Assembly (NCBI GenBank): GCA_965637545.1
Contig: OZ281495.1
Span: 4,526,001 to 4,590,000 of the forward strand
Reading direction: 5' to 3'
Length of the DNA: 64,000 nucleotides
Source: Phallusia mammillata
Taxonomy: Eukaryota
A model generated the notes under the pieces. It made no database searches, was not told where the DNA came from, and was given only the letters and a program-made list of their open reading frames with translations. Below, in pieces: positions 3,130 through 45,116 of this stretch. Position 1 is the first letter of the stretch. Every line of letters starts with the position of its first letter. The translations under genes and the position numbers were made by a program.

Positions 3130-4960
3130 ATACTTTAAGGTCAACGGCCATTTAAGCTGGTCTTGCTCACTGATAGGCTTATAGTCCCCAGTTGACGCAT
3201 ATTCGTGACACATGTGCTCACCTATGAAACGTGTTTTTTTCAGATTGTTCGTTGTTGCTCATAATCGTCGATGTTTTCAATTCAGGCGAGATAATTCTCA
3301 CAACTTGCTCGAGAAGACAAATACAGAAAAACCGAGTTTAAACAACCGGTGTCTTTGCAGTAGGTTATAGCTACTGAAGTTGAGTGTGCAAACAAAATCG
3401 TGACTGAATTTGCCGATCAGTTTATCTCTGCGGCATTCACCGGGGATTTGATGTTGGAGCTCACGACTCAAGTACTGTGCTACGTCCTTTCTGGTTGGGG
3501 ATAAATCTAAAGAGAGGATTAGAAAAAATCTTCTTTCAAGATAAAAAATGACAGATATAATAGCCACGTAATTGGCAGCCACGTGATTGAATCCAGCCAC
3601 TGTTGGTAACAATGTTATTTTTCCCAAAACTTGTTACACCAGCTTACCAGGAAAGATGTGCAACATTACCCCAAAGAACGTATCTTAAACCAGTGGTTCC
3701 CAAAAATTTTTAACGTAACTCAAAAACTTCTAAACAGTTTTTTGTGGTTTCTCGCGACTCCCGGATTGTTGTAATTTTAGTTGTATTTTTGTCTGGTTTA
3801 TTGTCAACTAATGCATCATTTTGGAAATGTTTAGTCAAAACATCAGACAGATATTATTCGTTTGTTTCACTAAATATTCTTATTTACCCGAAGTTTTTGG
3901 TGCATTGTCAGCCCATCAACACTTAACAATACGATGACAGACAACGTATCGCGTCGCAAACAAAGGTAAATATTAATACGGCAAAGAAATTTGTCATAAA
4001 ACATTTTGAAGCTTTCGGAAAAAAGCGACCAAAGAGGTTGATAGGGTTGGTTTTTAACATGGCAAACGAAAGTGCAATTTTACTGCTTTTTGTTCCAGAG
4101 CTCGAAAACCCACAAAAACTTGACATACTCGAATAGAAAACTAAAGTAAAAAATCAGCTAATAAGGCAGCATTTGAATTTGTATTTTATAAATAGCGCCA
4201 GTAACTTCCAACCACTACCAGTAACATTGTTATTATTTTAAAAATAGTTTTTCTGCAACGTGATGCCATTTTGAAGGTTTTAAACACTTATTTTATACAA
4301 TGACAACAATTTGCAATTCTACATTAAACAAAATGTGTTCAAAAATTTTTCCCGATGATAATCTGTCTGTATCAATGCCGTGAAATTGATAAGATACGAA
4401 GTAAAACGCGACCACGCGGTGGTGTGTTGGGAATTTGCAAACAAATGATGTCTGACAGGCAAAGATTCGGGCTATAAAATATTCGTCTTTATAACATCTG
4501 GACACATATGTTCTTCAACATGCTAATGCCGCAGTTAAAACTCTATTTGATACATATTACAATTGAAGCAATGGGTTTATGATTTATTCCCTTACTAAAG
4601 ACAAAACATTTCAATTTACATAGTGGTGTTAAAGGGGTTTGTCACTCTACCTTTAGCAGTTGTGTTCATACAGTTGACAAGCATGGGAACTGGAAGGCGT
4701 TATTTTTTTCAACTTATATGTTAATTAACCTAGAAAAAACAACCAGCTAAACCCTCGTGTTGAGCTGTAGTGTAACCTTACATGAAGCTCGGTGCCTACG
4801 TGAGACCAGAAGAAAAGTAAACTTTCATTGTTTGTTTCACAATCTTTCGTTGATAACTGTAGCACAGTGCTTGTTGACAGATACTTCAGGCCACAGTTGC
4901 AGCCTGGGAAAATTCAATACACTATCGCTGTGTTAACAATCTCATACTTGGTCCTGAATG
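3130..4960 (+). pseudogene. Possible decayed BTB-BACK-Kelch (Kelch-like) gene; copies at ~10960-12790, ~18760-20590 and partial ~27680-27990
   Basis: Broken plus-strand frames appear in the expected order: LLIIVDVFNSGEIILT (BTB-like, ~3250), CANKIVTEFADQFISAAF and ERIRKNLLSR (BACK-like, ~3390-3540), then YNIWTHM and IYIV..VHTVDKHGNW (Kelch-like, ~4490-4700). There are many stops and frameshifts. Motif recognition is by eye only. Confidence 0.3.
3691..3920. mobile_element. hAT-type MITE left-end remnant (also ~11519 and ~19310)
   Basis: Begins CAGTGGTTCCCAAA, the same terminus type as the complete hAT MITEs at 53425 and 58267. The right terminus is not recognisable. Confidence 0.4.
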
Positions 4961-5596: not shown

Positions 5597-8500
5597 TTAC
5601 TGGTCATACACTTCATAGGTTGTGTCTGTTGGTCCCTCTCTGTCATTATCTGTGCATGACAAATTAACTACTTTTTAACAGGTATTTCGGTTGAATATTG
5701 CAACTCAGCACTAACCATTTGAAGAGCGAAAGTCAGCAGTAGAATGGTCAACCTTCATTTCTTCGAAAAATAAAAAAAAAGTTTAATGAGTATACGGAAA
5801 ACATTATGGATATTTGTGTATTGACAACGAAAGAAATGCTACACCAACCTCAATTTCGATTCGCACTATTTGATTGTCTTCTTTAAAGATCTTAACACTT
5901 TCTCCACTTACCCGTCATGAGGAAAACATTCCTAGGCAGAAGAATTAATAACAGTCCAAACAATTCTATTAAAGCAATAGCACCCACGACACTAACAGCA
6001 ATAATAAGTGCTTGGTTTTCATTTCCATCACATATTTCGGATTCCATAATAATGGTAAACATCACAACAAGATCAGTAAATCCCTCAATTGGAGATTTAA
6101 TACGTAACTGGTAAGTTTCAACAGCTGCAAATGTCTTAAAAAGGTATATCAGTTGCGAACAATGATAATTAGAAAAAAAAAACTTACCTCAATTACAAAA
6201 ACAAACGTTTGGTTTGTGCTATCGTTGCGGTCAGCTGTTAAAGAACAACCACGACAAACCACAATTTCATCTACAAAAATGGCAATAAACAATAAGCACA
6301 CTTACATTACGGTGCTTGAATTTTGAATAAATGTTACCGTCTTTGGTCAACGTGTATTGAAATGAAGGGGGGTTGGAAGTAAACCTTACAAAACAACTTC
6401 CATTGACCACCTCATCCGATTGACAAGTTGTGTGACTGTTGATTTTTTCAGGTGAATCTGTCAAATACTTACATTTTAGTAATATTATTCAAATGCATTG
6501 AGATAAATAAATTGTAAATTTCATTAAAAAAGTATATTTTATTGAAAGTTACAGTACATGTTTAGCACCACCGACTTACATGTAACGTTTAAAAAGTATG
6601 TGCTTGTAAAATTTCCAAAAGCATCGCTTGTTAGGCAAATATAGTTTCCAAGGTCTTTTTTGGTCACATTATTCAAATTTAAAACGTTATTAAATTTGTC
6701 TATACCCCGCGTCTGGTCAGAAATTTGCCACTGAAATTTTGTGTCGAGTTCAATTGAATAGTCGATCGAGCAACTTAATGAGACATTTTCTCCGGCTTTT
6801 GTGGGTGTGTTGTTCACAACAAGCCCAGTAATGTAGGGTGCCCCTGAACAAAAACCAATTAATAATTTAACAAATCTACAAACAAAACATGAAACTCAAT
6901 ACTAAAACCTCCGGAACGTTTGTGGCAAACGTCATAAAAACTTACTAACGGTAACAACTGTGACATTAAGTTGCGAAACATCGCTACCAGCAATGTTACT
7001 TGAATTGCATGAAACTGATGCAGATTCTCCAAAACTGTGAGACAAAACACAAGAACTCTTGTTATGAATTATCTTTCCGATTTGAAATTTACAAATAGCA
7101 GGTGGATTTGCTTCTTTCAAACAGTTTAATGTCACTGTTTGTTCACCATCAAGAAAAACACCAAATTCATTTTCAATCGATAAATTACTAGATGTAATAT
7201 ATATCTTATTATGAATAGGTGGATCTGCAATAAATGTTGGTTGTTTTAGTTGTTTATGTTTCATTACGCATGAAAGCCAAAACCTACAAAAGACGTCAAG
7301 AAAAATCGTGCTCTGTAACATGTCGAATTTGTCTTCTGTCTGACATGTGTAGTTCCTTGTGTCAAACTTTTCTCAAGAATTGCTACTGTTCTTTTCTTTT
7401 TTCCCATTGAAAAGCCAATAACAGTTCGCAGGAGGATTTGCTTCATTTAAGCAATAAAATGTGACAATCTGTTCAGAGTTTAAAAGAATCACTTCACCCG
7501 ATGTTATTAGATTTGGTGATGCAAGATATGAGAGTTGTACATTATGTGGAGGATCTGTATAGCGTAAAGCATACATATTAAACTATGTAAATCTGTAGCA
7601 CAAATCTTACTTACACTGTTCATTCAGAATTGGAACGTTTGATTTTCCAAGTGTGTCGTCAAACTCCGTGTATGATGCGACATTCCTGTGCTTGAATGTT
7701 GGAGTAAACGGTACTCCTAGAGTCTATACAAATGTTTAAAAAATATCAAAACGCTATATTTCTAAACCTTCCGAAAAACGACTATACCAACGTTAAATAA
7801 ACATCACTAATATACACACTCGATTCCTGTCATCTTAAACCTCCTGGAATCAAACACCGTTAAACTAATAAAGCGACTGATCAAAAAACGAAACATCATA
7901 AACTTGAACAGTTTTTCCAATTATTGTATATATTGAGTATAACTTGCCTTGGAAACATTGTTATGGAGAATTGTACCAAAGTAATATCTAGAATTTGACC
8001 CATTTGGATATTGATTTTGATATTGACACTTAAGTAGTATGGTGCGATTTTCTGGTTTGGTATATGATGAACCAACAGTTCTATTGATTGAGACACTTGC
8101 AGTTGGAGCTGTATGTTTGTGTGGTTAATTGATTGCGTTCAGTAATAAAAGAAGCAGCAAAATAAGAACACTGCTACAATCAATATGTATTGAGCTAGCA
8201 TTTACAATATCTGGATTGTGGTTACAAACTGCAAAACGCGCTGCAGATACAGTGTTTCCAAAAATGCAACAAACCAACCAATCTTACCCGACCAATATTC
8301 CACTATATTTTCAACATCCCATTGAGCCGTTGACAAACACTTTGTGTTAGTGTTAGTGGCTGGGTTTCCATCGATAGTGAACAAACTTCCTTCGCTTGAA
8401 CAAGTAAACTCTCCTTGTGTGTTATAGAAACCATTTGGGGCCAACACAGATACATTATGATCCAACGTTCGTTGACAATCTAAAACAACCAATGATAAAT

Positions 8501-9334
8501 GAAGTTACAGTGAAGCAAATACCCTCTTGTCGTAGTTTTGAAACTAACTGTTGCAAAGTTTATTTGTCAACCGAAATTCGAAATTTTCTGCATAAGAATG
8601 ACACATTTGTACTTAATATAGTGACTCTTCAGTTCAAGGCCTATCAATTCAACAATGCTGTTATTCAATGAAAAACTTCTCGGTGACGTTACACCAAATG
8701 TCGTGTTAACACAAGTTCCGTTCCATTCAAGTGTTGTATATAATCCAGATGTGTTAAATGAACCAACATCGTACTTCGGTGGATCGCAAGCTTTGCCACA
8801 CCAAAAATAAACCGCTTGGTCGGTGGAACCGTTATTGAACCAAACCGTCCATTGCAAATCAGGTAGAGTTTCTCCGCTCACATTGCATGTACTATACCAA
8901 TACATCGTTCCATTGTAGTTTGTCGCCCAAGTTGTTTGATTTGGATACAAAACATCTGCAGTAAACGTTGTAATAAATTTACTGCACTATATGTTTTTTT
9001 ACTAGCTAGACGACTTTTAATTAAAAAAAAAAAACATTGTTGATGAAACAATTCCACTTTCTTGACCAAAAGCGCCAAATCTTTAAAGCATTAATTTAGT
9101 CCACCAACCAATCAGCATATATTCTGCAATGTTTTAAATTTGCAAAAATATATAAAATACAATGGACTAGTTTTTCTTAATCCGTGGTCCTGAAGACTAT
9201 TTAACTATTAATATAAACCTTGCAGAAAGTTTTGAACAATAACTCCTACCTCGTGTGTCGCTTTGACTTGTGGATGTGTTAACCCAAAAACAAAAACACC
9301 ACAAACAAACAACTAATGAACGAAACATTGTCAT
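5597..9334 (-). pseudogene. Receptor copy B, probably pseudogene (or truncated secreted product)
   Basis: Exons 9334-9250, 8955-(donor lost), 8479-8288, 8108-7948, 7723-7615, 7554-7373 (stop), 7224-6946, 6843-6580, 6457-6338, 6270-6188, 6134-5912 (TM) and tail exons to TAA at 5597. Lesions versus A/D: a 65-nt deletion at 8644/8645 removes the exon-2 donor, a 21-nt deletion in exon 5 removes the F-strand Cys, a ~350-nt deletion creates TGA at 7375-7373, and a ~54-nt deletion near 5884 removes the first tail-exon acceptor. Confidence 0.8.
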
Positions 9335-12300
9335 GAGCCAACTTCCTGCCTTGCTCTTTGTGTTCGATCAGATTCTCACACACTCAGCTTACTGACGGCC
9401 AAGACCATATGCCATATTGCGAAGTAGCTAAATTTTTTCATGTGTTTACCTAATCTATACGATCACGGTGTTATTTTTTTGTTAGAACAGCGTGAGCTCT
9501 TGCATCAACTACAGGTTTGCACGAAAAGCTACGAAAAGTTTAAACAGGTTAGTGTGAATTTAATAAGGGGGAGGGGTGGGGGGGGTAAATACGGTGCTAT
9601 ACTAAACTCAACAAACTATTCCAACAGAATAACATTAGGTCTAAATAAAACGATAGAAAATTGAAAGACGTCGACCCAATTAAAACAGTTGTGAAAAAGT
9701 CAATTTATAAATTGTTTGTTACGTAGTTAGGTAAATACACGTACACAAAATATGTGTGTTGATCTCCTGTTCCCGTCTAACGAATACCGAGTAGGCCAAA
9801 AACCCTAGCCCGAAAGTAAAAATACAAGCCCGAAACTAGATCCAAACCACATATTGATAAGGCAGAATTGAGTCCAAGCGATTTATCATCTTAAAATTGC
9901 GACACTAAGACATGTTAACACACATCAACTCCTCTTGTAAAAAGACATTTTAAATATTCCTACTTTCTTTATTACCATATTTTAAACAATCGTAGCAAAT
10001 TAAGGGTTTGACAAAACCTTTAAACTGTTGCCAGCGGATAACTTTGACCCTGGACTATGTAAACTGTACAGCGTATGGCAAATACACGGACGTTTGGGAC
10101 ACAAGCTGCATAAACGCGTGTAAACCAAACACCTGAGTTTATGGCACATCGAAACACAATTGGCTAAATAATGTGTGAGCCCACAACATTTACTCGACCA
10201 ACGTAAAACAACCCATTGAATTATGGCAATAAAATTGTTAACATAACCTACGACCGAAAACTTTTGGAGTGCTGTTAAATTTGGAAGTAGCAAACACACC
10301 GTGGTTGTTCTTGTTCATGTTACCCAGTGACTGCAATAACTTACTCCTTGGCGACATCTAGGAGTATAAATTTTTCACAACGCTATGGACTTGGTCTATC
10401 TCTAAAAACATTACTGGTTTAAAAAGGTAGTTTCCTGAATCCAGTCTGTTTTAAGTTTCTTAAACTCTGAATTTGAATGTAATGATCTATAACACCTATC
10501 TGTTTTTTTATACGCAATTATTTTAAAACACATACTTTCGAGCTTTATGGCTGCTACCTACAAGTCAGTTTTAAATCAAATGTTTTCTTTCAACCAAACG
10601 CAACACTGATCCATACAGAATCGTCTCTAAAATAGAATGAAAGGCACCACAATAAAAGTTCAATGAAACTATGCGGAGCCGAACAAAAGTGTGCCTCAGG
10701 AAAGACCACGGCAGTGGCCGGCATGTTACCATCAGACACTTGCGATATAACCGTGCACTGCAAATTTGTGCAAAGGCACACACACACACATTGTAAACAA
10801 ATTTGTGACAGTATTATACCCAAGTGAACTGAGTTTCTTACACGAGTCTCAGCTATCGACATATGTAAAGATTACTTAGCGGGTTGAGGTGTGCTTTTCT
10901 ACTTTGCGTAGTATCGGTGTGCGTGGAAATGCAAGAACAACAAGACGCATACTTTAAGGTCAACGGCCATTTAAGCTGGTCTTGCTCACTTTTAGGCTGA
11001 TAGTCCCCAGTTCACGCATATTCGTGACACATGTGCTCACCTATGAAACGTGTTTTTTCAGATTGTTCGTTGTTCCTCATAATCGTCGATGTTTTCAATT
11101 CAGGCGAGATAATTCTCACAACTTGCTCGAGAAGACAAACCGAGTTTGTACGGAACAACCGAGTTTAAACAACCGGTGTCTTTGCAGTAGGTTATATCTA
11201 CTGAAGTTGAGTGTGCAAACAAAATCGTCACAGAATTTGCCGATCAGTTTATCTATGCGGCATTCACCGGGGATTTGACGTTAAAGCTCACGACCCAAGT
11301 ACTGTGCTAGGTCCTTTCTGGTTGGGGATGAATCTAAAGACAGGATTAGAAAAAATCTTCTTTCAAGATTAAAAAATGACAGATATAATAGCCACGTAAT
11401 TGGCAGCCACGTGATTGAATCCAGCCACTGTTGGTAACAATGTTATTTTTCCCAAAACTTGTTACACCAGCTTACCAGGAAAGATGTGCAACATTACCCC
11501 AAAGAACGTATCTTAAATCAGTGGTTCCCAAAAATTTTTAACGTAACTCAAAAACTTCTAAACAGTTTTTTGTGGTTTATCGCGACTCCCGGATTGTTGT
11601 AATTTTAGTTGTATTTTTGTCTGGTTTATTGTCAACTAATGCATCATTTTGGAAATGTTTAGTCAAAACATCAGACAGATATTATTCGTTTGTTTCACTA
11701 AATATTCTTATTTACCCGAAGTTTTTGGTGCATTGTCAGCCCATCAACACTTAACAATACGATGACAGACAACGTATCGCGTCGCAAACAAAGGTAAATA
11801 TTAATACGGCAAAGAAATTTGTCATAAAACATTTTGAAGCTTCCGGAAAAAAGCGACCAAAGGGGTTGATAGGGTTGGTTTTTAACATGGCAAACGAAAG
11901 TGCATTTTTACTGCTTTTTGTTCCAGAGCTCGAAAACCCACAAAAACTTGACATACTCGAATAGAAAACTAAAGTAAAAAATCAGCTAATAAGACAGCAT
12001 TTGCATTTGTATCTTATAAATAACGCCAGTACCTTCCAACCACTACCAGAAACATTGTTGTTATTTCAAAAATAGTTTTTCTGCAACGTGATGCACTTTT
12101 GAAGGTTTTAAACACTTATTTTACACAATGACAACAATTTGCAAATCTACATTAAACAAAAAGTGTTTAAAAATTTTTCCCGATGATAATCTGTCTGTAT
12201 CAATGCCGTGAAATTGATAAGATACGAAGTAAAGCTCGACCACGCGGTGGTGTGTTGGGAATTTGCAAACAAATGATGTCCGATGATCTGATTCGGGCTA

Positions 12301-13436
12301 TAAAATATTCGTCTTTATAACATCTGGACACATATGTTCTTCAACATGCTAATGCCACAGTTTAAAACTCTATTTGATACATATTACAATTGAAGCAAAG
12401 GTTTATGATTTATTCCCTTACTAAAGACAAAACATTTCAATTTACATAGTGGTGTTAAAGGGGTTTGTCACTCTACCTTTAGCAGTTGTGTTCATACAGT
12501 TGACAAGCATGGGAACTGGAAGGCGTTATTTTTTCAACTTATATGTTAATTAACCTAGAAAAAAAACCCAGCTAAACCCTCGTGTTGAGCTGTAGTGTAA
12601 CCTTACATGAAGCTCGGTGCCTACGTGAGACCAGAAGAAAAGTAAACTTTCATTGTTTGTTTCACAATCTTTCGTTGATAACTGTAGCACAGTGCTTGTT
12701 GACAGATACTTCAGGCCACAGTTGCAGCCTGGGAAAATTCAATACACTATCGCTGTGTTAACAATCTCATACTTGGTCCTGAATGTTAATTAGCCTAACT
12801 TTACAAAACAACTAAAAATAAGTTTTTCAAGTAATCACTAAACTAATACCAATTTGTCGGTTTTGATTTACTGCTTATTTTTTTAAAAACTTCTGATAAC
12901 CTTTATTTTACATCAACTTGCAAATGATCTATTACGCAACTTGAGAATGTACCAACAACTAGTAATTAAGTACAAGCAACTAGCAGTAAGATAAATTTTA
13001 GGAATAAATCTGTTTTGGAGGGCAATGCGTATATCCTCTTATTCTTGCCACGATTGACAAGGATATATGTAAGAGAATATCAACAAACAATTAGTTATCA
13101 CAACGCTAATATTGTCACATCACTTATCAACGTTTGGGATTGGGGTAAAAGTCTAGTGGAATGGCAATATACGAAGTAAAGAAATAACTTACATGGTTGT
13201 CAAATTAAAAAAATCATCACATAAAAACCATGAGGTTAATTGTCAAAAACAAACTTATAACATCGACAAAACAACAACCACTGTGTACAAAATTAGCTGT
13301 GAACAAGCATCTGGGTTATATAAAACCAGCAACCACTACAGTGCGAATCTAAAATGCAAGATAATCAAGGGCAATGGCATAGAATTTTCGAAATATTAGA
13401 TATACCAAAAATTTATTAAGGAATAGATTAAACGTT

Positions 13437-16400
13437 TTATTGGTCATACACTTCATAGGTTGTTTCTGTTGGTCCCTCTCTGTCATTATCTGTGCATGAC
13501 AAATTAACTACTTTTTAACAGGTATTTCGGTTGAATATTGCAACTCAGCACTAACCATTTGAAGAGCGAAAGTCAGCAGTAGAATGGTCAACCTTCATTT
13601 CTTCTTCGAAAATAAAAAAAAAGTTTAATGAGTATACGGGAAACATTATGCCTTTTTATGCATTGACAACGAAAAAAATGATACACCAACCTAAATTTCG
13701 ATTCGCACTATTTGATTGTCTTCTTTGAGGACTTAGGTTTGTATCTGCGATAATGAGTTTAATCAAAACACGGTTTTCAAAGATCTTAACACAGTCTCCA
13801 CTTACCTACCTTGAGGAAAACATTCCTAGGCAGAAGAATCAATAACAGTCCAAATAATTCGATTAAAGCAATAGCACCGACGACACTAACAGCAATAATA
13901 AGTGCTTGGTTTTTATTTCCACCACATATTTCGGATTCCATAATAATGGTAAACATCACAACAAGATCAGTAAATCCCTCAATTGGAGATTTAATACGTA
14001 ACTGGTAAGTTTCAACAGCTGCAAATGTCTTAAAAAGGTATATCAGTTGCGAACAATGATAATTAGAAAAAAAAAACTTACCTCAATTACAAAAACAAAC
14101 GTTTGGTTTGTGCTATCGTTGCGGTCAGCTGTTAAAGAACAACCACGACAAACCACAATTTCATCTACAAAAAAGGCAATAAACAATAAGCACACTTACA
14201 TTACGGTGCTTGAATTTTGAATAAATGTTACCATCTTTGTCCAAACAACTTGACCACCTCATCCGATTGACAAGTTGTCTGACTGTTGATTTTTTCAGGT
14301 GAATCTGTCAAATACTTACATTTTAGTAATATTATTCAAATGCAGTGAGATAAATAAATTGTAAATTTCATTAAAAAAGTATATTTTATTGAAAGTTACA
14401 GTACATGTTTAGCACCACCGACTTACATGTGACGTTTAAAAAGTATGTGCTTGTAAAATTTCCAAAAGCATCGCTTGTTAGGCAAATATAGTTTCCAAGG
14501 TCTTTTTTGGTCACATTATTCAAATTTAAAACGTTATTAAATTTGTCTATACCCCGCGTCTGGTCAGAAATTTGCCACTGAAATTTTGTGTCGAGTTCAA
14601 TTGAATAGTCGATCGAGCAACTTAATGAGACATTTTCTCCGGCTTTTGTGGGTGTGTTGTTCACAACAAGCCCAGTAATGTAGGGTGCCCCTGAACAAAA
14701 ACCAATTAATAATTTAACAAATCTACAAACAAAACATGAAACTCAATACTAAAACCTCCGGAACGTTTATGGCAAACGTCATAAAAACTTACTAACGGTA
14801 ACAACTGTGACATTAAGTTGCGAAACATCGCTACCAGCAATGTTACTTGAATTGCATGAAACTGATGCAGATTCTCCAAAACTGTGAGACAAAACACAAG
14901 AACTCTTGTTATGAATTATCTTTCCGATTTGAAATTTACAAATAGCAGGTGGATTTGCTTCTTTCAAACAGTTTAATGTCACTGTTTGTTCACCATCAAG
15001 AAAAACACCAAATTCATTTTCAATCGATAAATTACTAGATGTAATATATATCTTATTATGAATAGGTGGATCTGCAATAAATGTTGGTTGTTTTAGTTGT
15101 TTATGTTTCATTACGCATGAAAGCCAAAACCTACAAAAGACGTCAAGAAAAATCGTGCTCTGTAACATGTCGAATTTGTCTTCTGTCTGACATGTGTAGT
15201 TCCTTGTGTCAAACTTTTCTCAAGAATTGCTACTGTTCTTTTCTTTTTTCCCATTGAAAAGCCAATAACAGTTCGCAGGAGGATTTGCTTCATTTAAGCA
15301 ATAAAATGTGACAATCTGTTCAGAGTTTAAAAGAATCACTTCACCCGATGTTATTAGATTTGTTGATGCAAGATATGAGAGTTGTACATTATGTGGAGGA
15401 TCTGTATAGCGTAAAGCATACATATTAAACTATGTAAATCTGTAGCACAAATCTTACTTACACTGTTCATTCAGAATTGGAACGTTTGATTTTCCAAGTG
15501 TGTCGTCAAACTCCGTGTATGATGCGACATTCCTGTGCTTGAATGTTGGAGTAAACGGTACTCCTAGAGTCTATACAAATGTTTAAAAAATATCAAAACG
15601 CTATATTTCTAAACCTTCCGAAAAACGACTATACCAACGTTAAATAAACATCACTAATATACACACTCGATTCCTGTCATCTTAAACCTCCTGGAATCAA
15701 ACACCGTTAAACTAATAAAGCGACTGATCAAAAAACGAAACACCATAAACTTGAACAGTTTTTCCAATTATTGTATATATTGAGTATAACTTGCCTTGGA
15801 AACATTGTTATGGAGAATTGTACCAAAGTAATATCTAGAATTTGACCCATTTGGATATTGATTTTGATATTGACACTTAAGTAGTATGGTGCGATTTTCT
15901 GGTTTGGTATATGATGAACCAACAGTTCTATTGATTGAGACACTTGCAGTTGGAGCTGTATGTTTGTGTGGTTAATTGATTGCGTTCAGTAATAAAAGAA
16001 GCAGCAAAATAAGAACACTGCTACAATCAATATGTATTGAGCTAGCATTTACAATATCTGGATTGTGGTTACAAACAGCAAAACGCGCTGCAGATACAGT
16101 GTTTCCAAAAATGCAACAAACCAACCAATCTTACCCGACCAATATTCCACTATATTTTCAACATCCCATTGAGCCGTTGACAAACACTTTGTGTTAGTGT
16201 TAGTGGCTGGGTTTCCATCGATAGTGAACAAACTTCCTTCGCTTGAACAAGTAAACTCTCCTTGTGTGTTATAGAAACCATTTGGGGCCAACATAGATAC
16301 ATTATGATCCAACGTTCGTTGACAATCTAAAACAACCAATGATAAATGAAGTTACAGTGAAGCAAATACCATCTTGTCGTAGTTTTGAAACTAACTGTTG

Positions 16401-17179
16401 CAAAGTTTATTTGTCAACCGAAATTCGAAATTTTCTGCATAAGAATGACACATTTGTACTTAATATAGTGACTCTTCAGTTCAAGGCCTATCAATTCAAC
16501 AATGCTGTTATTCAATGAAAAACTTCTCGGTGACGTTACACCAAATGTCGTGTTAACACAAGTTCCGTTCCATTCAAGTGTTGTATATAATCCAGATGTG
16601 TTAAATGAACCAACATCGTACTTCGGTGGATCGCAAGCTTTGCCACACCAAAAATAAACCGCTTGGTCGGTGGAACCGTTATTGAACCAAACCGTCCATT
16701 GCAAATCAGGTAGAGTTTCTCCGCTCACATTGCATGTACTATACCAATACATCGTTCCATTGTAGTTTGTCGCCCAAGTTGTTTGATTTGGATACAACAC
16801 ATCTGCAGTAAACGTTGTAATAAATTTACTGCACTATATGTTTTTTTACTAGCTAGACGACTTTTAATTAAAAAAAAAACATTGTTGATGAAACAATTCC
16901 ATTTTCTTGACCAAAAGCGCCAAATCTTTAAAGCATTAATTTAGTCCACCAACCAATCAGCATATATTCTGCAATGTTTTAAATTTGCAAAAATATATAA
17001 AATACAATAGACTAGTTTTTCTTAATCCGTGGTCCTGAAGACTATTTAACTATTAATATAAACCTTGCAGAAAGTTTTGAACAATAACTCCTACCTCGTG
17101 TGTCGCTTTGACTTGTGGATGTGTTAACCCAAAAACAAAAACACCACAAACAAACAACTAATGAACGAAACATTGTCAT
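13437..17179 (-). pseudogene. Receptor copy C, probably pseudogene
   Basis: Near-identical to B over exons 1-8, with the same lesions: donor deletion at 16491/16492, exon-5 deletion and TGA at 15222-15220. A private deletion shrinks exon 9 to 73 nt (14304-14232, versus 120 nt), causing a frameshift. ATG at 17179, terminal TAA at 13437. Confidence 0.8.
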
Positions 17180-20100
17180 GAGCCAACTTCCTGCCTTGCT
17201 CTTTGTGTTCGATCAGATTCTCACACACTCAGCTTACTGACGGCCAAGACCATATGCCATATTGCGAAGTAGCCAAATTTTTTCATGTGTTTACCTAATC
17301 TATACGATCACGGTGTTATTTTTTTGTTAGAACAGCGTGAGCTCTTGCATCAACTACAGGTTTGCACGAAAAGCTACGAAAAGTTTAAACAGGTTAGTGT
17401 GAATTTAATAAGGGGGAGGGGTGGGGGGGTAAATACGGTGCTATACTAAACTCAACAAACTATTCCAACAGAATAACATTAGGTCTAAATAAAACGATAG
17501 AAAATTGAAAGACGTCGACCCAATTAAAACAGTTGTGAAAAAGTCAATTTATAAATTGTTTGTTACGTAGTTAGGTAAATACACGTACACAAAATATGTG
17601 TGTTGATCTCCTGTTCCCGTCTAACGGATACCGAGTAGGCCAAAAACCTAGCCCGAAAGTAAAAGTACAAGCCCGAAACTAGATCCAAACCACATATTGA
17701 TAAGGCAGAATTGAGTCCAAGCGATTTATCATCTTAAAATTGCGACACTATGACATGTTAACACACATCAACTCCTCTTGTAAAAAGATATTTTAAATAT
17801 TTCTACTTTCTTTTCTACCATACTTTGAACAGTTGTAGCAAATTAAGGGTTTGGCAAAACTGTACAGCGTATGGCAAATACACGGAAGTTTGGGACACAA
17901 GCTGCACAAACGCGTGTAAACCAAACACTTCAGTTTATGGCAGATCGAAACACAATTGGCTAAATAATGTGCGACTCCACAACATTTACTCGACCAACAT
18001 GAAACAACCCACTGAATTATCACAGTAAAATTGTTAACATAACCTACGTCCAATAACTTTTGGAGTGTTGTTAAGTTTGGAAGTAGCAAACACACTCGTG
18101 GTTGTTCTTGTTCATGTTACCAAGTGACTGCAATAACTTACTCCTTGGCGACATCTAGGAGTATAAATTTTTCACAACGCCCTACATGTAAAAATGTGGA
18201 CTTGGTCTATCTCTAAAAACATTACTGGTTTAAAAAGATAGTTTCCTGAATCCAGTCTGTTTAAGTTTCTTAAACTCTGAATTAGAATGTAATGATCTAT
18301 TATACCTGTCTGTTTTTTTATACGCAATTATTTTAAAACACATACTTTCGAGCTTTTCGGCTGCTACCTATAAGTCAGTTTTAAACCAAATGTTTTCTTT
18401 CAATCAAACACAACACTTATCCATACGGAATCGTCTCTAAAATAGATGCAAGGGCACCACAATAACAGGTTTATGAAACTATGCGGAGCCGAACAAAAGT
18501 GTGCCTCAGGAAAGACCACGGCAGTGAACATGTTACCATCAGTCACTTGCGAAGTAACCGTGCACTGCCAATTTGTGCAATAGCACACACATACACATTG
18601 TAAACAAATTTGTGACAGTATTATACCCAAGTGAACTGAGTTTCTTACACGAGTCTAAGCTATCGACATATTTAAAGATTACTTAGCGGGTTGTGGTGTG
18701 CTTTTCTACTTTGCGTAGTATCGGTGTGCCTGGAAATGCAAGAACAACAAGGCGCATACTTTAACGTCAACGGCCATTTAAGCTGGTCTTGCTCACTGAT
18801 AGGCTTATAGTCCCCAGTTCACGCATATTCGTGACACATGTGCTCACCTATGAAACGTGTTTTTTTTCAGATAGTTCGTTGTTGCTCATTATCGTCGATG
18901 TTTTCAATTCAGGCGAGATAATTCTCACAACTTGCTCGAGAAGACAAATACAGAACAACCGAGTTTAAACAACCGGTGTCTTTGCAGTAGGTTATATCTA
19001 CTGAAGTTGAGTGTGCAAACAAAATCGTGACTAAATTTGCCAAACAGTTTATCTCTGCGGCATTCACCGGGGATTCGATGTTGGAGCTCACGACTCAAGT
19101 ACTGTGCTAGGTCCTTTCTTGTTGGGGATAAATCTAAAGACAAGATTAGAAAAAATATTCTTTCAAGATTAAAAATTACAGATATAATAGCCACGTAAAT
19201 CGGTAATGGAATCGAGCCACTTTTGGTAACAATGTTATTTTTCCCACAACCCGTTATACCAGCCCACAGGAAAGATGTGCAACATTACCCTAAACAACGT
19301 ATCTTAAACCAGTGGTTCCTAAAAAATTTTAACGTAACTCAAAAACTTCTAAACAGTTTTTTTGTGGTTTCTCGCGACTCCCGGATTGTTGTAATTTTAG
19401 TTGTATTTTTGTCTGGTTTATTGTCAACTAATGCATCATTTTGGAAATGTTTAGTCAAAACATCAGACAGATATTATTCGGTTTTTTTTCGACTAAATAT
19501 TCTTGTTTGCCCGATCTTCTTGGTGCATTGTCAGCCAGACAACACTTAACAATACGATGACAAACGACGTATCGCGTCGCAAACAAAGGTAAATATTAAT
19601 ACGTCAATGTAAGTTGTCGTAAAACATTTTGAAGCTTTCGGAAAAAAGAGACCAAAGAGGTTAATAGGGTTGGTTTTTAACATGGCAAACGAAAGTGCAT
19701 TTTTACTGCTTTTTGTTCCAGATCTCGAAAACCCACAAAAACTTGACATACTCGAATAGAAACCTAAAGTAAAAAATCAGCTAATAAGACAACATTTGCA
19801 TTTGTATCTTATAAATAACGCCAGTACCTTCCAACCACTACCAGAAACATTGTTATTATTTCAAAAATAGTTTTTCTGCAACGTGATGCACTTTTGAAGG
19901 TTTTAAACACTTATTTTACACAATGACAACAATTTGCAAATCTACATTAAACAAAAAGTGTTTAAAAAATTTTCCCGATGATAATCTGTCTGTATCATTG
20001 CCGTGAAATTGATAAGATACGAAGTAAAGCTCGACCACGCGGTGGTGTTTTGGGAATTTGCAAACAAATGATGTCTGACAGGCAAAGATTCGGGCTATAA

Positions 20101-21232
20101 AATATTCGTCTTTATAACTTCTGGACACATATGTTCTTCAACATGCTAATGCCACAGTTTAAAACTCTATTTGATACATATTACAATTGAAGCAAAGGTT
20201 TATGATTTATCCCCTTACTAAAGACAAAACATTTCAATCTACATAGTGGTGTTAAAGGGGTTTGTCATTCTACCTTTAGCAGTTGTGTTCATACAGTTGA
20301 CAAGCATGGGAACTGGAAGGCGTTATTTTTTGAACTTATATGTTAATTAACCTAGAAAAAACAACCAGCTAAACCCTCGTGTTGAGCTGTAGTGTAACCT
20401 TACATGAAGCTCGGTGCCTACGTGAGACCAGAAGAAAAGTAAACTTTCATTGTTTGTTTCACAATCTTTCGTTGATAACTGTAGCACAGTGCTTGTTGAC
20501 AGATACTTCAGGCCACAGTTGCAGCCTGGGAAAATTCAATACACTATCGCTGTGTTAACAATCTCATACTTGGTCCTGAATGTTAATTAGCCTAACTTTA
20601 CAAAACAACTAAACATAAGATTTTCAAGCAATCACTAAACTAATACCAATTTGTCGGTTTTGATTTACTGCTTATTTTTTAAAACCTCTGATAACCTTTA
20701 TTTTACATCAACCTGCAAATGATCTATTTACGCAACTTGAGAATGTACCAACAACTAGTAATTAAGTACAAGCAACTAGCAGTAAGATAAATTTTAGGAA
20801 TAAATCTGTTTTGGAGGGCAATGCGTATATCCTCTTATTCTTGGCACGATTGACAAGGATATATGTAAGAGAATATCAACAAACAATTAGTTATCAGGAG
20901 GCTAATATTGTCACATCACTTATCAACGTTTGGGATTGGGGTAAAAGTCTAGTGGAATGGCAATATACGAAGTAAAGAAATAACTTACATGGTTGTTTGA
21001 TTAAAAAAAACATCACAGCAAAACCATAAGGTTTATTGTCAAAAACAAACTCATAACATCGACAAAACAACAACCATTGTGTACAAAGTTAGCTGTGTAC
21101 AAGTATCTGGGTTATATAAAACCAGCAACCACTACAGTGTGAATCTAAAATGCAAGATAAGCAAGGCCAATGGCATAGAATTTTCGAAATATTAGATATA
21201 CCAAAAATTTATTAAGGAATAGATTAAACGTT

Positions 21233-24200
21233 TTATTGGTCATACACTTCATAGGTTGTGTCTGTTGGTCCCTCTCTGTCATTATCTGTGCATGACAAAT
21301 TAACTACTTTTAACAGGTATTTCGGTTGAAATATTGCAACTCAGCACTAACCATTTGAAGAGCTAAAGTCAGCAGTAGAATGGTCAACCTTCATTTCTTC
21401 GAAAAATAAAAAAACAGTTTAATGAGTATACGGAAAACATTATGGTTATTTGTGTATTGACAACGAAAGAAATGCTACACCAACCTAAATTTCGATTCGC
21501 ACTATTTGATTGTCTTCTTTGAGGACTTACTTTTGTGTCTGCGATAATGAGTTTAATCAAAACAGTTTTCAAAGATCTTAACACAGTCTCCACTTACCCG
21601 TCTTGAGGAAAACATTCCTAGGCAGAAGAATCAATAACAGTCCAAATAATTCGATTAAAGCAATAGCACCCACGACACTAACAGCAATAATAAGTGCTTG
21701 GTTTTTATTTCCACCACATATTTCGGATTCCATTATAATGGTAAACATCACAACAAGATCAGTAAATCCCTCAATTGGAGATTTAATACTTAATTGGTAA
21801 GTTTCAATAGCTGCCAATGTCTTAAAAAATATTTCGGTTGCAAACAATGATAATTGAGAAAAAAAAACTTACCTCAATTACAAAAACAAATGTTTGGTTC
21901 GTGCTATCGTTGCGGTCAGCTGTTAAAGAACAACCACGACAAACCACAATTTCATCTACAAAAAAGGCAATAAACAATAAGAACACTTACATTACGGTGC
22001 TTGAATTTTGAATAAATGTTACCGTCTTTGGTCAACATATATTGAAATGAAGGGGGGTTGGAAGTAAACCTTACAAAACAACTTCCATTGACCACCTCAT
22101 CCGATTGACAAGTTGTGTGACTGTTGATTTTTTCAGGTGAATCTGTAAAGTACTTACGTTTAAGTTATATTATTCAAATACATTGAGTTAATAAATTCTA
22201 AATTTCATTAAAAAAGTGCATTTAATTGAAAGTTGCAGTAACTGTTTAGCACCACCGACTTACATGTGACGTTTAAAAAGTATGTGCTTCTAAAATTTCC
22301 AAAAGCATCGCTTGTGTGGCAAATATAGTTTCCAAGGTCTTTTTTGGTCAAATTATTCAAATTTAAAGCGTTATTAAATTTGTCCATATCCCGCGTCGGG
22401 TCAGGAATTTGCCACTGAAATTTTGTGTCGAGTTCAATTGAATAGTCGATCGAGCAACTTAATGAGACATTTTCTCCGGCTTTTGTGGGTGTGTTGTTCA
22501 CAACAGGCCCAGTAATGTAGGGTGCCCCTGAACAAAAACCAATTAATAATTTAACAAATCTACAAACAAAACATGAAACTCAATATTAAAACCTCCGGAA
22601 CGTTTATTGCAAACGTCATAAAAACTTACTAACGGTAACAACTGTGACATTAAGTTGCGAAACATCGCTACCAGCAATGTTACTTGAATTGCATGAAACT
22701 GATGCTGATTCTGTAAACTTGTGAGACAAAACACAAGAACTCTCATTATGGATATTATTCCCTATTTGAAATTCACAACTGGCAGGTGGATTTGATTGTC
22801 TTGAACAGTTGAATGTCACTGTTTGTTCACCATCGAGAAAAACACCGAATTCATTTTCAACCGATAAATTACTGGATGTGATATATATCTCATTATGAAT
22901 CGGTGGATCTGCAACAAATGTTGTTTTAGTTTATTATGTGTTTTTTTATGCATGAAAGTCAAAACCTACAAAAGACATCAAGGAAAATCGTGATCTGCAA
23001 AGTGTCGAATTTGTCTACTGTCTGACATGTGTAGTTCCCTGTGTCAAATTTTGAAACGTTGTTTATGTTAAGAACTGGTTTGTTTAAATCTAACCCATGC
23101 ACATTTGTTGTCACATTCCAATGGAACGTTGTATTCAGCTCGTATTGATATTCAACATTGCAATTCAGTATAACATTATCTCCTTGTATAATTGTGTCAC
23201 CTCCAGAATTATCAATATTTACATATCCTATAAAAAAATCCTTGCAAATATTAACATAAATTCAACTTACATAAACAACTCAAATAAATATTTCGTACTG
23301 TTTTCCACGACAAGTAATTCAATCACAGTGGACGTGGCATTTCCTAAACTATTTTCCATAAAACAAGAAATGTTGCTTGAAGACGAAATGACTTCATTAA
23401 TTTGGCAAGAATTGCCACTGTTCTCTTCTTTTTTTCCATTGTGAAGCAAATAACAGTTTGCAGGTGGATTTGCATCATTTGAACAATAGAATGTAACATT
23501 TTGTGCAGAGTTTAAGAGAAACTCTTTGTCCGAACTTATGAAATAGTCTGATAGCATAATTCCCAAATTCGGTTCATATGGAGGATCTGTATACGGGGAA
23601 CAATGCATTTGATGTGTTAAACTAGTTTAATGTTTATTACTTACACTGTACATCCAAAACCGTAACTTGAGATTTGCCCAGTGTGTTATTGTATTTTGTG
23701 TACGGCGTAACAGCTTGGCACGAAATTTTAAAATTGTTATTCTCGCGTGTTGGGGTGAATTGCTTTGTTGTGTTCTGTAAAACCGTTATTATTGCTTTGT
23801 TTTTGAATTTATTTAAAAACTGTTTCAAAAGTTTTTTTTAATCTAAAGAAGTACCTGCCTAGCTTTAAAACCAAACCGCAAACTGAAACAAATAGCCAAT
23901 AATCCGCTGGTAATTATCTTAGCGTCTTGTTAATGGTTACCTTTAAACTTTCCTCCAAAAATGTGCCGAAATAATAGTTTGAACTCAATCCGATTGGATA
24001 AACATCTTCGTATTGGCACTTAGGCAGTAAAGTAGTGTTTTCTGTTGTGGTATATGATAAACCAACCGATCCATTGATGGAAAGTTTCACAATTGGAGCT
24101 GTACAAAAATTGTAATTTAGAAAAAAAGTATTACCAAAGTTTGTTTAAAATCACTGAAAATCTACATAACGTTGGAAAGACGGCATTAATGACACAAACT

Positions 24201-25575
24201 TACCCGCCCAACATTCCATGTTATTTTCATCTTCCCACTGAGAAGTTGACAAACACTTTGTGGTAGCGGTAATGGCTGGGTTTCCATCGTTAGTAAACAA
24301 ACTTCCTCCGTTTGAACAAGTAAACTCTCCTTGTGTGTTATAAAAACCATTTAGTGCCAACACAGATACATTGAAGTCTAACGCTTGTTGACAATCTGAA
24401 ACAATAACCAATGATAAATGAAGTTAGTGAAGCAATAAACTCTTGTCGTGAAACTTATTGTTGCAAAGTTTATTTGTCAACCAAAATTCAAAATTTTCTG
24501 TATAAGAATGGCACATTTATACTTATTATAGTGACTCTTCAGTTCAAGGCCTATTTTAAGCAGGAAAGAGTACCTTTAGCTGTAATATTCCTTACAGCTT
24601 CATATGTATAAGAGGTATTTAAATCAACAATGCTGTTATTCAATGTAAAACTTCTGGGTGACGTTACACCAAATGTTGTGTTAACACAAGTTCCGTTCCA
24701 TTCAAGTGTTGTACATAATCCGGGTGTAATAAAAGCACCAGCAATATACTGCGGTGGGTCGCAAAGTATGTCACACCATATATGAACGACTTGGTCGAAG
24801 GAACCGTCATTGAACCAAACTGTCCATTGCAATGTGGGTGGACTTTTTCCACTTACATAACATGTACTGTACCAATACATTGTTCCATTGTAGTTTGTCG
24901 CCCAAGTTGTTTGACTTGGATACAAAACATCTGCAGTAAAGTTGATATTAATTTACTGCTAATTTACAGCTGAAATATTTTGCTTAAAATTGATTACAAA
25001 GCTTTTTGCATTCGCTTTTACACACGTTCATTGAAAAAAAAAACTGACAATTTTTAGCATGACATCTAAAGGTACCAATCTTCTGACCCACCATAGTATT
25101 GACGTAATGCTTTTGCAATCAATTCAGCATATATCCTGCAATGTTAATAACTTGCAAATATATATTTCGAATACATTTGACTAGTGCTTTTCGCCTTTGT
25201 TCGTGACCCAAAACTAGGCCCCCGTTTAATTTGGTTGGTTCGTCGGTTAAACTAGTGGGGGCATTTTGTTGCATGTTCAATAGGCGTTTCTGATTTGCGA
25301 ATTAGGACAGAATAGTTCTATGACATTGCAAAACTTGGATTTTAAAAATTGGCAAATTGGTTCGCTATAAACTTTCGCTTTGCTGCCCAAAGAGGTGTGG
25401 CATTAGCCAAAATAAATCACTGTAATAAGTGTGAAAGTATTTGACTACTATTACAAACTTTGCAGAGAGTTATGAACAAACACTTCCTACCTTGTGTGTC
25501 TCTTTGACTTGTGGCTGTGACGAAGCAAAAATAAAAACACCACAAACAAACAACGAATGAACGAAACATTATCAT
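21233..25575 (-). CDS. Receptor copy D, intact type I membrane protein (~776 aa): SP - Ig D1 - CCP - five Ig-like domains - TM with Glu - ~58-aa tail ending TTYEVYDQ
   Basis: 14 exons: 25575-25491, 24930-24574, 24395-24204, 24098-23941, 23774-23645, 23586-23299, 22908-22630, 22527-22264, 22142-22023, 21955-21873, 21820-21598, 21538-21485, 21396-21352, 21285-21233. All are GT-AG, the phases join and there is no internal stop (2331 nt). Ig motifs include C..ANPPA.C and W..D.G.Y.C. TM is ALIIAVSVVGAIALIELFGLLLILL. AATAAA overlaps the stop. The three tail exons are less certain than the extracellular ones. Confidence 0.85.
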
Positions 25576-38874: not shown

Positions 38875-41800
38875 TCAGATGTTTGTTGAATCTGTTAAAT
38901 GAAAACGTTATCTGTAATACTAACAAATACACAAAAGCAGTAACTTACCTTTTGCTACAAGATTCGGTTTCTTCTTTATTGGAGGTTTAGATTTTTTTAT
39001 GCTGGGACCAGCTTCTGTTTTACCTAAAGTTGAACGAACATTTTATTCGCAGTAAGCGTAATGTCATACAAGACTACGAAAACCAGTCTGTGTAACAGGA
39101 TGATTCTGTTTGAGTAATCCAGAAACTGACGATGCCCTAATAGGCGAAATTAATATTTCTGTTTTGTAAATAAACGACGTCACTAATGTTGAAGGTTTTC
39201 CGCCGTATTTTATACACATTTTAAGTGTAACTTGCTTAACCAACATAAACTATGTTTTCTCACCGGTTGGTTTTGCCTTGTTTACTTGAGCATAAACATC
39301 TCCACTGGATGTGGGGCAGCTGCTATATTCTGAAATTTACGTGACGCTGCTTTAAGTGCAAAAAAACAAATTTTATAGCGATAACAAGTAGAGGTTATAA
39401 AGAAAAATTGAAAATTCATATTTTTTACTTAAGTTCGAAAAACATATAGTTTGTACTCAATGCAATGTATGTTACCATTCATACTTGCTTAAAGTATTTG
39501 TTAACTTTTGCAACAGACCTTTCATGGGGAAATCCTGTGGCGTAATTACGTGCAAAGGAATCCCAGTTGGTTGGTGAAAGTTGTACAAGGGATTCAGTTT
39601 TTCGTCTTTTTCAACTAAAAAGCATAATGAAAAGTGTAAAAGTAATTGACAATACAAACATTTAAACTAAAAAAAATGTTGTTAGAACGTAAATAGAGAC
39701 AATTATATTTTTGGATGAACTATTTTACTTTTTGTCTTTTTTGATTTGTCCACTTCAGCATAAACTTCATTTCCTGATGTTGCTGAACGTGATTCGTATA
39801 GTGAATTGACAGGTTCTTCTTTAACTAATCATAACGACAGAATTTACTGTTACGCACTTTAAGTTTTACATTAAACCTAACTATAGTCAATCGTTTCAAA
39901 AAAAGTGTTTTAATCATTAAGATTATTTTTTTTGTAAAAATTTCGTACATATTACAGATGATGCCATCAGGTGTTTTGTTTGACCAATTCGTGCTCAATT
40001 TCGTCCGACCAAACCAGGCTTTTTGAAATAAGTGTTGTGCGGTCCTCTAAGACGCTTTGAATTTAAAAGAAGTGTGATGCGATTTTTGTACAAAGCTAGG
40101 GACAATACTAGTGTTTTGATAAGCAATCAAGTAAAGTTCATTTATTCCAAAAAAAGGTTTCAGTAGTTGCATATTTAACTTGCCTTTCTGCTTTTTCTTG
40201 ATGTCAACTTGTGCGTACGTATCTCCAATCGTCACAGAGCGTTGTGGTGCATCTATTTGTAATCAAACTCAATCAACGGAGCTTGTTTACTTAACAGAAT
40301 AAAGCTTTGACCAACGAAGCACACCGAAAAACTTTTTAACAATTAAGTCCAATGGACCTTAACTCGTAAGTTTAGTCGATGTTGCACAAAAGTTTGTAAG
40401 AACTATAACTTAAGTGCTCGTTGTAAAGTAACTTATATTACAGATTACTTGCTTAATAGTCAACTTACCGTTAACAACTTTGCAATCTGAGCGTGGTGGG
40501 TTTATTCGTTCCTCGTTTTTAGAGCGTTGCACTTGTGTAAAGAACGTGTGTTAATATGCAAGGTATTGCAAAGAAAAAAATATGTCAAAAGTATTTTCTC
40601 TTACCAACAGCGTATGCATCAGTCGCTTCATCTGGGTCGCCACTGGTATCGTAAAGTGGATTGATTCTTTCTTCTTTTACACTACCTAAAACAAAAAAGC
40701 CAAATGAGTTTGGGGCTGGTTTGCTACAAAGAATGAGTATATATGCCATTTATTCGAATTGAATGAGTATCAGCTTATTCATCGTATGGCCCTGCACGTA
40801 AATATTATATTAACGAAGCAAAGCAAATTTGCTTACTAGCTCAAACATAAGTTTCAATTTTTTGTACACTACTTTGCAAATGCCCACCTAAGTCCGTATT
40901 TTCGTGATCAGATTGTCTTTTATCACTACCGGAATTTTCACCTTGGAATGTAAATAAATTTAGAAACAAAGATCAACTGGTACAGTATGTCAAAATAAAC
41001 TTACTGGATTTATTCAAATAATTTCTTCTCAAGAAAAACACCGCCACCAACACAATAACAATAAAAGCAATTGCACCCACTATACTTCCAGCGATTATGG
41101 CTGTTTGATTTCCGTTTCCATAAGGTACGTTGCTTTCCCTGGATATTGCAAACTCAACAACTAGATCATTAAATTCTTCCATTGGTGATTTAATTCTTAA
41201 CTGATATGTTTCTGTTTCAGAGAAAATCTAAAAAATGCAAACTTGCAGATATCTAAATACAGAAAATAACAACACACAGAATTTACCTCTATCATCAATA
41301 AAAATGTTTGCTTTGTGCTGTCCTTATTATCAGTTGTCAGGGAACAATTAAGGCAAAGCACGATACGACCTCAAAAAATGTCAATAAATATAAACCAAGC
41401 GAATTACAAAGAAAATAAAACTTGACTGACCATTATTTGTCAAAGTGTATTGAAACGAAGGTGGATTGGAGGTAAACGTAACAAAGCAATTTCCATTTAC
41501 CACTTCATCTGATTGACAGTTCGCGTTACTACTTATTTCCTGTGGAGAATCTGAAAAGTATTTTCACACAACATTTTTACGGGTCAAAAATTAATTAAAT
41601 AAAAGCAACTCACAAGTCACATTTAAAAAATGTCGACTGGTGTAATTTCCAAAAACATCACTTGTTTTGCAAACATAGTTTCCCAAATCCAATCTGGTCA
41701 AATTAGTCAAAATCAAAACATCATTTAATTTATCTATCACTCTCGTCTTATCAGGAATTTGCCACTGATACTTTGTATCGAGTTCAACAGAATAATTAAC

Positions 41801-44800: not shown

Positions 44801-45116
44801 GTAGTTTGCTGTCTGTAAACATGTATAAAATATACGATAATTGGCAGCAACAAATGATACATTTTCTAAAATTTAGCGATATTAAGCAACAAAAGTGAAA
44901 ACTCTTTACAAAACGACGCAAACTGCAATAAAATACGGTGTTTAGAAACTTAGTATCAAACGGCCATATCTTAAAAACTTCTCTCAATTTTTAAGTTTCC
45001 AATTAAGACCGGAAAAATGTCAAAAAGTAAATACCATCTGCAGCATCCAGCGTAAACAACCAGAGTAGCACACAAATTTTGTACACCATACTTCCCGAAC
45101 GTGTATGAGCTGCCAT
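38875..45116 (-). CDS. Receptor paralog E, intact (~807 aa): SP - Ig D1 - CCP - four Ig-like domains - uncharged TM - long tyrosine-motif tail
   Basis: 17 exons: 45116-45035, 44812-44423, 43392-43201, 43139-42979, 42682-42553, 42220-41942, 41877-41614, 41550-41431, 41369-41287, 41227-41005, 40685-40605, 40252-40184 (GC donor), 39824-39729, 39614-39519, 39329-39264, 39023-38949, 38891-38875. Exon lengths 192/130/279/264/120/83/223 match D exactly. TM is AIIAGSIVGAIAFIVIVLVAVFFL. The 39519 donor and the last exon are tentative. Confidence 0.85.

Follow-up and report, generated by a model that had tools for sequence, protein, structure and literature searches.

No living group is more closely related to the vertebrates than the tunicates, which decide between self and non-self by means of polymorphic clusters of immunoglobulin (Ig) and sushi receptors. 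The window analyzed here, 64,000 nucleotides of the tunicate Phallusia mammillata (contig OZ281495.1, positions 4,526,001 to 4,590,000), holds part of a fast-evolving cluster of genes for single-pass receptors of the Ig/CCP type. It is AT-rich (about 35 % G+C), contains no N runs and, when compared with itself, reveals a tandem unit of about 7.85 kb in three full copies, with others present in part. Identity between the units is 92-99 % and is alike for exons, introns and spacers. They carry the genes that we call D-type, namely B, C and D, all on the minus strand; of a further gene, A, the 5' exons alone lie inside the window (656-1012 and downstream). A paralogue, gene E, is found about 17 kb from D, and its related exons are 41-62 % identical to those of D. 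Within this receptor family the D-type genes form a short-tailed branch, young and duplicated in tandem, and our interest was in a glutamate (Glu) that they bear inside the transmembrane (TM) helix.

The TM exons of the D-type genes occupy 5912..6134 (B), 13806..14028 (C) and 21820-21598 (D) on the minus strand. A previous sequence-only reading of this DNA had pointed to the span 5912-21820, which runs from the 3' end of the B TM exon to the 5' end of that of D, and had noted the same TM peptide in all three copies. Translation and codon alignment agree with it: GAIALIELFGLLLILL is encoded at 5984-5937 in B, 13878-13831 in C and 21670-21623 in D. This peptide belongs to a helix that reads ALIIAVSVVGAIALIELFGLLLILL in D (21623..21697) and is located at 6011-5937 in B and 13905-13831 in C. 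The whole exon codes for two beta-strands, a short Cys-bearing loop and the helix within its immediate frame, NQ-ALIIAVSVVGAIALIELFGLLLILL-PRN. The Glu codon is GAA in three out of three copies (5966-5964 in B, 13860-13858 in C, 21652-21650 in D), with synonymous differences around it: Ile is ATA in B versus ATC in C and D, one Leu is TTG in B versus TTA in the other two copies, a Leu further along shows the opposite usage (TTA in B, TTG in C and D), and C has GTC for GTG at a Val. In gene E the TM exon (41005..41227, minus strand) encodes the helix AIIAGSIVGAIAFIVIVLVAVFFL, where Val (GTT, 41059-41057, within FIVIV) stands at the Glu position, in agreement with the VIV reported earlier, and there is no juxtamembrane Cys. 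The TM Glu of the D-type genes is a real, lineage-specific feature of the inner-leaflet half of the helix.

This residue is the 16th of an uncharged hydrophobic run of 25, preceded by 15 residues and followed by 9; because each of these flanks is too short to span the bilayer, the Glu must lie within it. All the best insertion windows of 19-25 residues contain the Glu, with sums that remain favorable to insertion, -1.4 to -3.2 kcal/mol, versus -4.4 to -6.2 kcal/mol when Val is substituted; these are approximate values on the Hessa 2005 scale. With the four-sequence alignment, AlphaFold predicted that exon residues 39-65 form a single unbroken helix, with a predicted local distance difference test score (pLDDT) of 79-88 for the block. 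A TM prediction placing the Glu outside the bilayer had been named as an outcome that would count against the observation, and neither the insertion windows nor the AlphaFold helix puts it there.

The TM exons of D and E can be aligned codon for codon, with no gap between GAIA and RN. Both have the outer half of the helix in common (IIA.S.VGAIA.I); the inner half differs, and Val, Leu and Arg of E correspond to Glu57, Gly60 and Pro67 in the D-type exon. A frameshift as the origin of the Glu-bearing half was considered and rejected, since D and E align without gaps. A second distinctive residue is the membrane-proximal Cys35, situated 7-8 residues outside the helix, which is found in B, C and D and not in E (D codon 21718-21716).

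The third difference is in the tail. The last exon of the D-type genes (5597..5649 in B, 13489-13437 in C, 21285-21233 in D, minus strand) ends with TTYEVYDQ and a stop codon, about 380 bases downstream of the TM peptide in each copy. The tail of D, PRNVFLKTEMKVDHSTADFSSSNDNDREGPTDTTYEVYDQ, comprises 40 residues and has no YxxL/I pair, and therefore no immunoreceptor tyrosine-based activation motif (ITAM). Gene E has a long tail, assembled from phase 1 mini-exons that encode NPLY, DAYAV, EVYAEV and DVYAQV (39264..40685, minus strand). The D-type last exon, PTDTTYEVYDQ-stop, aligns with the PTSSGDVYAQV exon of E and has its stop at the +3 Val position; this short alignment suggests that the D-type stop truncates a motif of the [E/D]VYxxV type.

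Gene D (21233..25575, minus strand) is the sole D-type copy in the window with an unbroken reading frame. The gene models rely on splice signals and paralogue comparison only: they were built from stop-free segments, tblastx of the units against E, AG/GT boundaries and consistent phases. The spliced model of D starts with a candidate signal-peptide exon, MIMFRSFVVCLWCFYFCFVTATSQRDTQ (25575-25491), which is conserved with B, followed by an N-terminal domain exon (N-domain, 24930-24574), a CCP-like exon (24395-24204) and the two exons of a split Ig domain, Ig1a and Ig1b (24098-23941 and 23774-23645). Then come the exons Ig2 (23586-23299), Ig3 (23227-22970), Ig4 (22908-22630) and Ig5 (22527-22264), two Cys-containing stalk exons (22142-22023 and 21955-21873), the TM exon and two tail exons (21396-21352 and 21285-21233, the latter with the stop). 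From the N-domain to the stop this model gives 815 open codons with AG/GT boundaries and agreeing phases. The predicted protein is about 843 amino acids long, and its ectodomain has about 750 residues in about nine extracellular modules.

Against Pfam ig, with its cut-off of 21.8 bits, exons Ig3 and Ig5 reach 33.5 and 33.0 bits, and Ig2 and Ig4 give weak scores only. No Pfam match was obtained when the exact N-domain, CCP-like, stalk and TM exons were scanned; since this includes the CCP-like exon, its sushi/CCP label depends solely on a pattern of four Cys and a Trp. The Ig exons of D contain an internal duplication of an Ig pair (22970-23586 versus 22264-22908), Ig2 corresponding to Ig4 and Ig3 to Ig5, with 45 % amino acid identity. 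Gene E has one Ig pair only, lacks the Ig2-Ig3 pair and is shorter than D, its domain order being N, CCP, Ig1, Ig4, Ig5. The N-terminal domain has the pattern C...W...C-x4-FG, with copies at 24575-24928, 657-1010 and 44463-44810. AlphaFold modeled it with a pLDDT of 66.6, and a Foldseek search of the PDB returned only weak V-type Ig-like matches, the best being human cytomegalovirus UL141 at E = 0.015; the domain is probably an Ig-like sandwich. In D it has a fifth Cys that is not found in A, B or C.

Copies B and C carry several lesions on the minus strand. Alignment reveals a 65-bp deletion common to both (8646..8650 in B, about 16493-16497 in C), by which the N-domain exon loses its last 16 codons and the GT donor. 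Both have a fused Ig2/Ig3 exon (7273..7553 in B) that is interrupted by a TGA in frame (B, 7375-7373; C, 15222-15220), and Ig1 has lost its second Cys in each of the two. The fused exon arose by deletion between Ig2 and Ig3. The Ig1a exon ends as AAG|GCAAGT in B (7945-7950) and at the equivalent place in C, a GC donor versus the GT of D. Copy C alone has a lesion in the first stalk exon (14240..14249), a net deletion of 47 bp in which 57 bases became 10, with a frameshift. Contigs from four DNA sequencing runs of three studies were aligned to gene D, and in those of runs X1 and X2 the N-domain joint (24554>24624), the fused-exon junction (as a loose end at 23052) and the stalk joint (22030>22088, with 10 inserted letters) were all recovered. 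As they recur in these contigs, the junctions are not assembly slips. All the lesioned exons are phase 1-1, and the frame would survive their skipping: leaving out the fused Ig2/Ig3 exon alone would give an E-like domain order, and leaving out the N-domain exon as well would remove N. Judging from these sequences, B and C are probably disabled for a full-length product, though not proven dead, and D alone seems capable of yielding the full-length protein.

The contigs also bear on the number of copies. Over the TM exon the contig depths add up to about 4-5 times that of a single copy in X1 (256 versus 46-52) and to about 3.7 times in X2. More near-identical copies are probable outside the window, gene A being one candidate. 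Position 21722 has T>G in contigs of X1, X2 and X5, by which a Glu of the juxtamembrane ESE becomes Asp. As this variant is not in the assembly copies B, C or D, additional D-type copies or alleles exist.

The sequence-only reading had described the TM Glu as conserved. Divergence of B or C from D is 5.7-5.9 % in exons and 7.1-7.8 % in introns, and between B and C it is 1.5 % and 2.6 %, respectively. At the divergence separating B and C from D, the probability that a GAA codon under neutrality still encodes Glu is 0.77-0.83. Moreover, the codon alignment makes the TM exon of C a mosaic, with its first 11 codons like those of B and codons 36-73 like those of D (5' B, 3' D), which indicates gene conversion, or recombination through unequal crossing-over, among the tandem copies. 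Because C is such a mosaic of B and D, the three copies are not independent. By this alignment, the three identical helices amount to about one evolutionary event, followed by recent duplication and gene conversion, and not to long-term conservation. The word conserved is thus no evidence of selection for recent duplicates with visible gene conversion, two of the three lesioned, in which chance alone would retain the codon with a probability of about 0.8. The observation itself was accurate; its weight was overestimated.

There are some signs of constraint. Over the 25-residue helix, B and D differ by no non-synonymous and three synonymous changes, where about four non-synonymous changes would be expected under neutrality, and the probability of finding none is then 0.017. 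In the remaining, extracellular part of the TM exon the same pair has six non-synonymous and two synonymous differences (helix against rest of exon, Fisher's test p = 0.06). The ratio of non-synonymous to synonymous substitution rates (dN/dS) is 0.39 from Ig4 to the stop. These counts are weak evidence that the helix as a whole, and not the Glu specifically, may be under constraint. In the search of public proteins with the TM exon (see below), the single match, to a vertebrate phosphatase-like protein (E = 7e-4), was judged spurious, only the hydrophobic helix being aligned. The contig of X3, a 2018 sample, spans 21200-21701 with 4 mismatches in 502 bases. Among the differences listed for the runs, the sole one adjoining the Glu codon is 21653 G>T, a synonymous change from ATC to ATA, as in B.

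We propose that the D chain may be an assembly-dependent subunit by virtue of its TM Glu, its Cys and its truncated tail, a reading to which we give somewhat less than an even chance. In this view the Glu, the membrane-proximal Cys peculiar to the D type and the shortened tail would work jointly, and the chain would need a polar or charged intramembrane contact with a second chain, be it a further D chain or some other partner. The D chain would then be the short-tail counterpart of long-tailed chains with tyrosine motifs, such as E, as CD300C is of CD300A. The proposal is reasonable because the membrane Glu co-occurs with a juxtamembrane Cys, a truncated tail and a nearby long-tailed paralogue. 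A short-tailed branch close to a long-tailed tyrosine-motif paralogue that lacks TM charge is a layout typical of assembly-dependent receptors.

Human CD300C offers the nearest precedent. It is a short-tailed Ig receptor with a TM glutamate, Glu191, and signals through FcR-gamma (PMC12447643). Its E191V mutant loses FcR-gamma signaling, and it is paired with CD300A, which bears an ITIM, or immunoreceptor tyrosine-based inhibitory motif (PMC12447643). The polarity of the D-type charge had been presented as reversed with respect to known receptors; given CD300C Glu191, an acidic residue on the receptor side has a precedent (PMC12447643), and by this analogy the arrangement is not new in principle. 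The likeness extends to a short-tailed TM-Glu chain lying beside a long-tailed tyrosine-motif paralogue without TM charge, and to related ectodomains homogenized by gene conversion (PMC12447643). The two systems are not homologous in sequence, however; CD300C has a single Ig domain where D has about nine extracellular modules, and the motifs of E, [E/D]VYxxV and NxxY, are not canonical ITIMs. Among short-tailed, activating-type paired Ig receptors with a charged TM segment, of the CD300C/KIR2DS kind, D would find a place by the charge in the core of its TM helix, by its short tail, by having no complete signaling motif and by its long-tailed related paralogue nearby.

Several results weigh against an assembly-dependent D chain. 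A six-frame scan of the 64 kb gave no gene-like TM segment that has a Lys or Arg in its interior. Among 1.84 billion public representative proteins, an exhaustive HMMER profile search with the B/C/D/E alignment detected no relative of the TM exon. The signal of constraint on the helix is marginal (p 0.02-0.06) and belongs to the whole helix rather than to the Glu. Positions 21650-21652 have no variant among the differences listed for the four DNA runs, but the known B-type differences at 21647 and 21632 are not listed either. No run on record as RNA contained any words of the locus in a search of sequencing runs. Finally, two of the three D-type copies have frame-breaking lesions, and the branch may be decaying. 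In the partner search, a repeated plus-strand candidate with a Lys, ISIYIVVLKGFVTLPLAVVFIQL (4608-4670, 12434-12496 and 20228-20290), was rejected, as it lies in spacer, with a stop three codons upstream and no start; it is probably a chance open reading frame in duplicated spacer DNA. The TM segments of the two neighboring plus-strand membrane genes of sushi type are uncharged.

Decay of this kind leads to the most serious alternative, nearly as likely as our proposal: the D-type genes would be a neutral or degenerating, dying branch, in which the change from Val to Glu, the extra Cys and the truncation of the tail were accidents copied with the 7.85 kb unit. Such accidents would be tolerated or mildly harmful, and the Glu would have no specific role. 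The deleted donor, in-frame stop, lost Ig Cys and GC donor of B and C, and the frameshift of C, are what such a history would leave behind. Exon divergence is near intron divergence, the codon would be retained by chance with a probability of about 0.8, no RNA was found, and the tyrosine motif of the tail is cut by a stop. On the other hand, D has diverged from B and C by about 6 % with its 815 codons still open and its splice sites all retained, dN/dS is 0.35-0.39 and not 1, and the helix has no amino acid change despite three to four synonymous ones. Furthermore, the lesioned exons are all of phase 1-1 and would keep the frame if skipped, with the order of E resulting from skipping of the fused exon.

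DAP12, FcR-gamma, CD3 and CD79 chains combine an acidic TM residue with a membrane-proximal extracellular Cys, and CD3 and CD79 also have an Ig ectodomain. D-type chains share the acidic TM residue and the membrane-proximal Cys, both absent from E, but D has no ITAM, a very large ectodomain and a 40-residue tail ending in YEVYDQ. A self-contained adaptor-like chain, forming disulfide-linked dimers through the membrane-proximal Cys, pairing its two Glu with a basic residue of another receptor in the manner of a DAP12 or CD3 dimer and signaling through the terminal YEVY, would fit the acidic charge of the TM residue and the location of Cys35, which B, C and D but not E have at 7-8 residues from the helix on its outer side. 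YEVY would also fit the core-1 tyrosine class, YxxY/L/V/I, of the tails of Botryllus FcoR receptors (PMC11507803). Nonetheless, we consider this quite unlikely. Instead of an ITAM there is one short C-terminal tyrosine cluster, the second Tyr of which has no +3 residue; with its roughly 750 residues the ectodomain does not resemble DAP12, FcR-gamma or zeta; the N-domain of D has an extra Cys, so that the juxtamembrane Cys is not demonstrably unpaired; and no receptor with a basic TM residue was seen locally, in the 64-kb window. The earlier suggestion that D-type chains act as their own adaptor through TTYEVYDQ is therefore weak: the tail is without an ITAM, YEVY is its only motif and the stop falls at +3. 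Least credible of all is a shift of the true TM segment that would leave the Glu at the interface or snorkeling to the cytosolic side, for which it can be said that the Glu is closer to the cytosolic end, nine residues from Pro-Arg, but which is opposed by the 15 and 9 hydrophobic residues that flank it, neither stretch able to span the bilayer alone, by its presence in all the best 19-25-residue windows and by the continuous AlphaFold helix over residues 39-65.

The closest tunicate system by description is the fester co-receptor (FcoR) family of Botryllus schlosseri, made of type I Ig receptors with ITIM, hemITAM, core-1 YxxY/L/V/I and core-2 [E/D][V/I]YxxV/L motifs, which occur in activating, inhibitory and neutral forms with switching between them (PMC11507803). 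The Phallusia genes resemble it, by description, as tunicate type I single-pass Ig receptors in fast-evolving tandem clusters beside sushi-type membrane genes; D contributes a candidate signal peptide, one TM helix and Ig domains (Ig3, Ig5) to this likeness. With regard to tail motifs, E has EVYAEV, DVYAQV, DAYAV and NPLY, and the D-type tail has only YEVY, of core-1 type, and the EVYDQ cut by the stop. The sizes differ, FcoR having 520-610 amino acids against about 843 in D, which has the extra Ig2-Ig3 pair. Ascidians have been reported to lack homologues of DAP12, DAP10, LAT and SLP-76 (PMC11507803). Charged TM residues are mentioned neither in the FcoR preprint (PMC11507803) nor in a 2025 review, and a literature search for charged-TM pairing in ascidians gave nothing relevant.

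The two sushi-like membrane genes lie on the plus strand at 47400-56400, with Cys-rich modules and uncharged TM segments at 49806-49868 and 55643-55705. The first of them is head-to-head with gene E, like the fester/FcoR pairs described in Botryllus. Elsewhere in the window, an open segment on the minus strand (32833-33153) contains FIKTHKTGSTS, a motif known from galactose-3-O-sulfotransferase-like enzymes.

The present evidence, one intact gene and two damaged recent copies, is a lead and not a result. An assembly-dependent D chain, if it exists, would allow receptor assembly and signaling to be tested by a mutation of one residue and a hunt for the partner, and would be relevant to the question of whether charged-TM and long-tailed receptors are paired by ancestry or by convergence. 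A more specific form, in which a disulfide-linked, short-tailed, Glu-bearing Ig chain and its partner would form a tunicate charged-TM assembly, seems to us unlikely. If it were true, the principle of TM charge known from the natural killer cell, T-cell and Fc receptors of vertebrates would either predate the vertebrates or have arisen independently, within an FcoR-like cluster.

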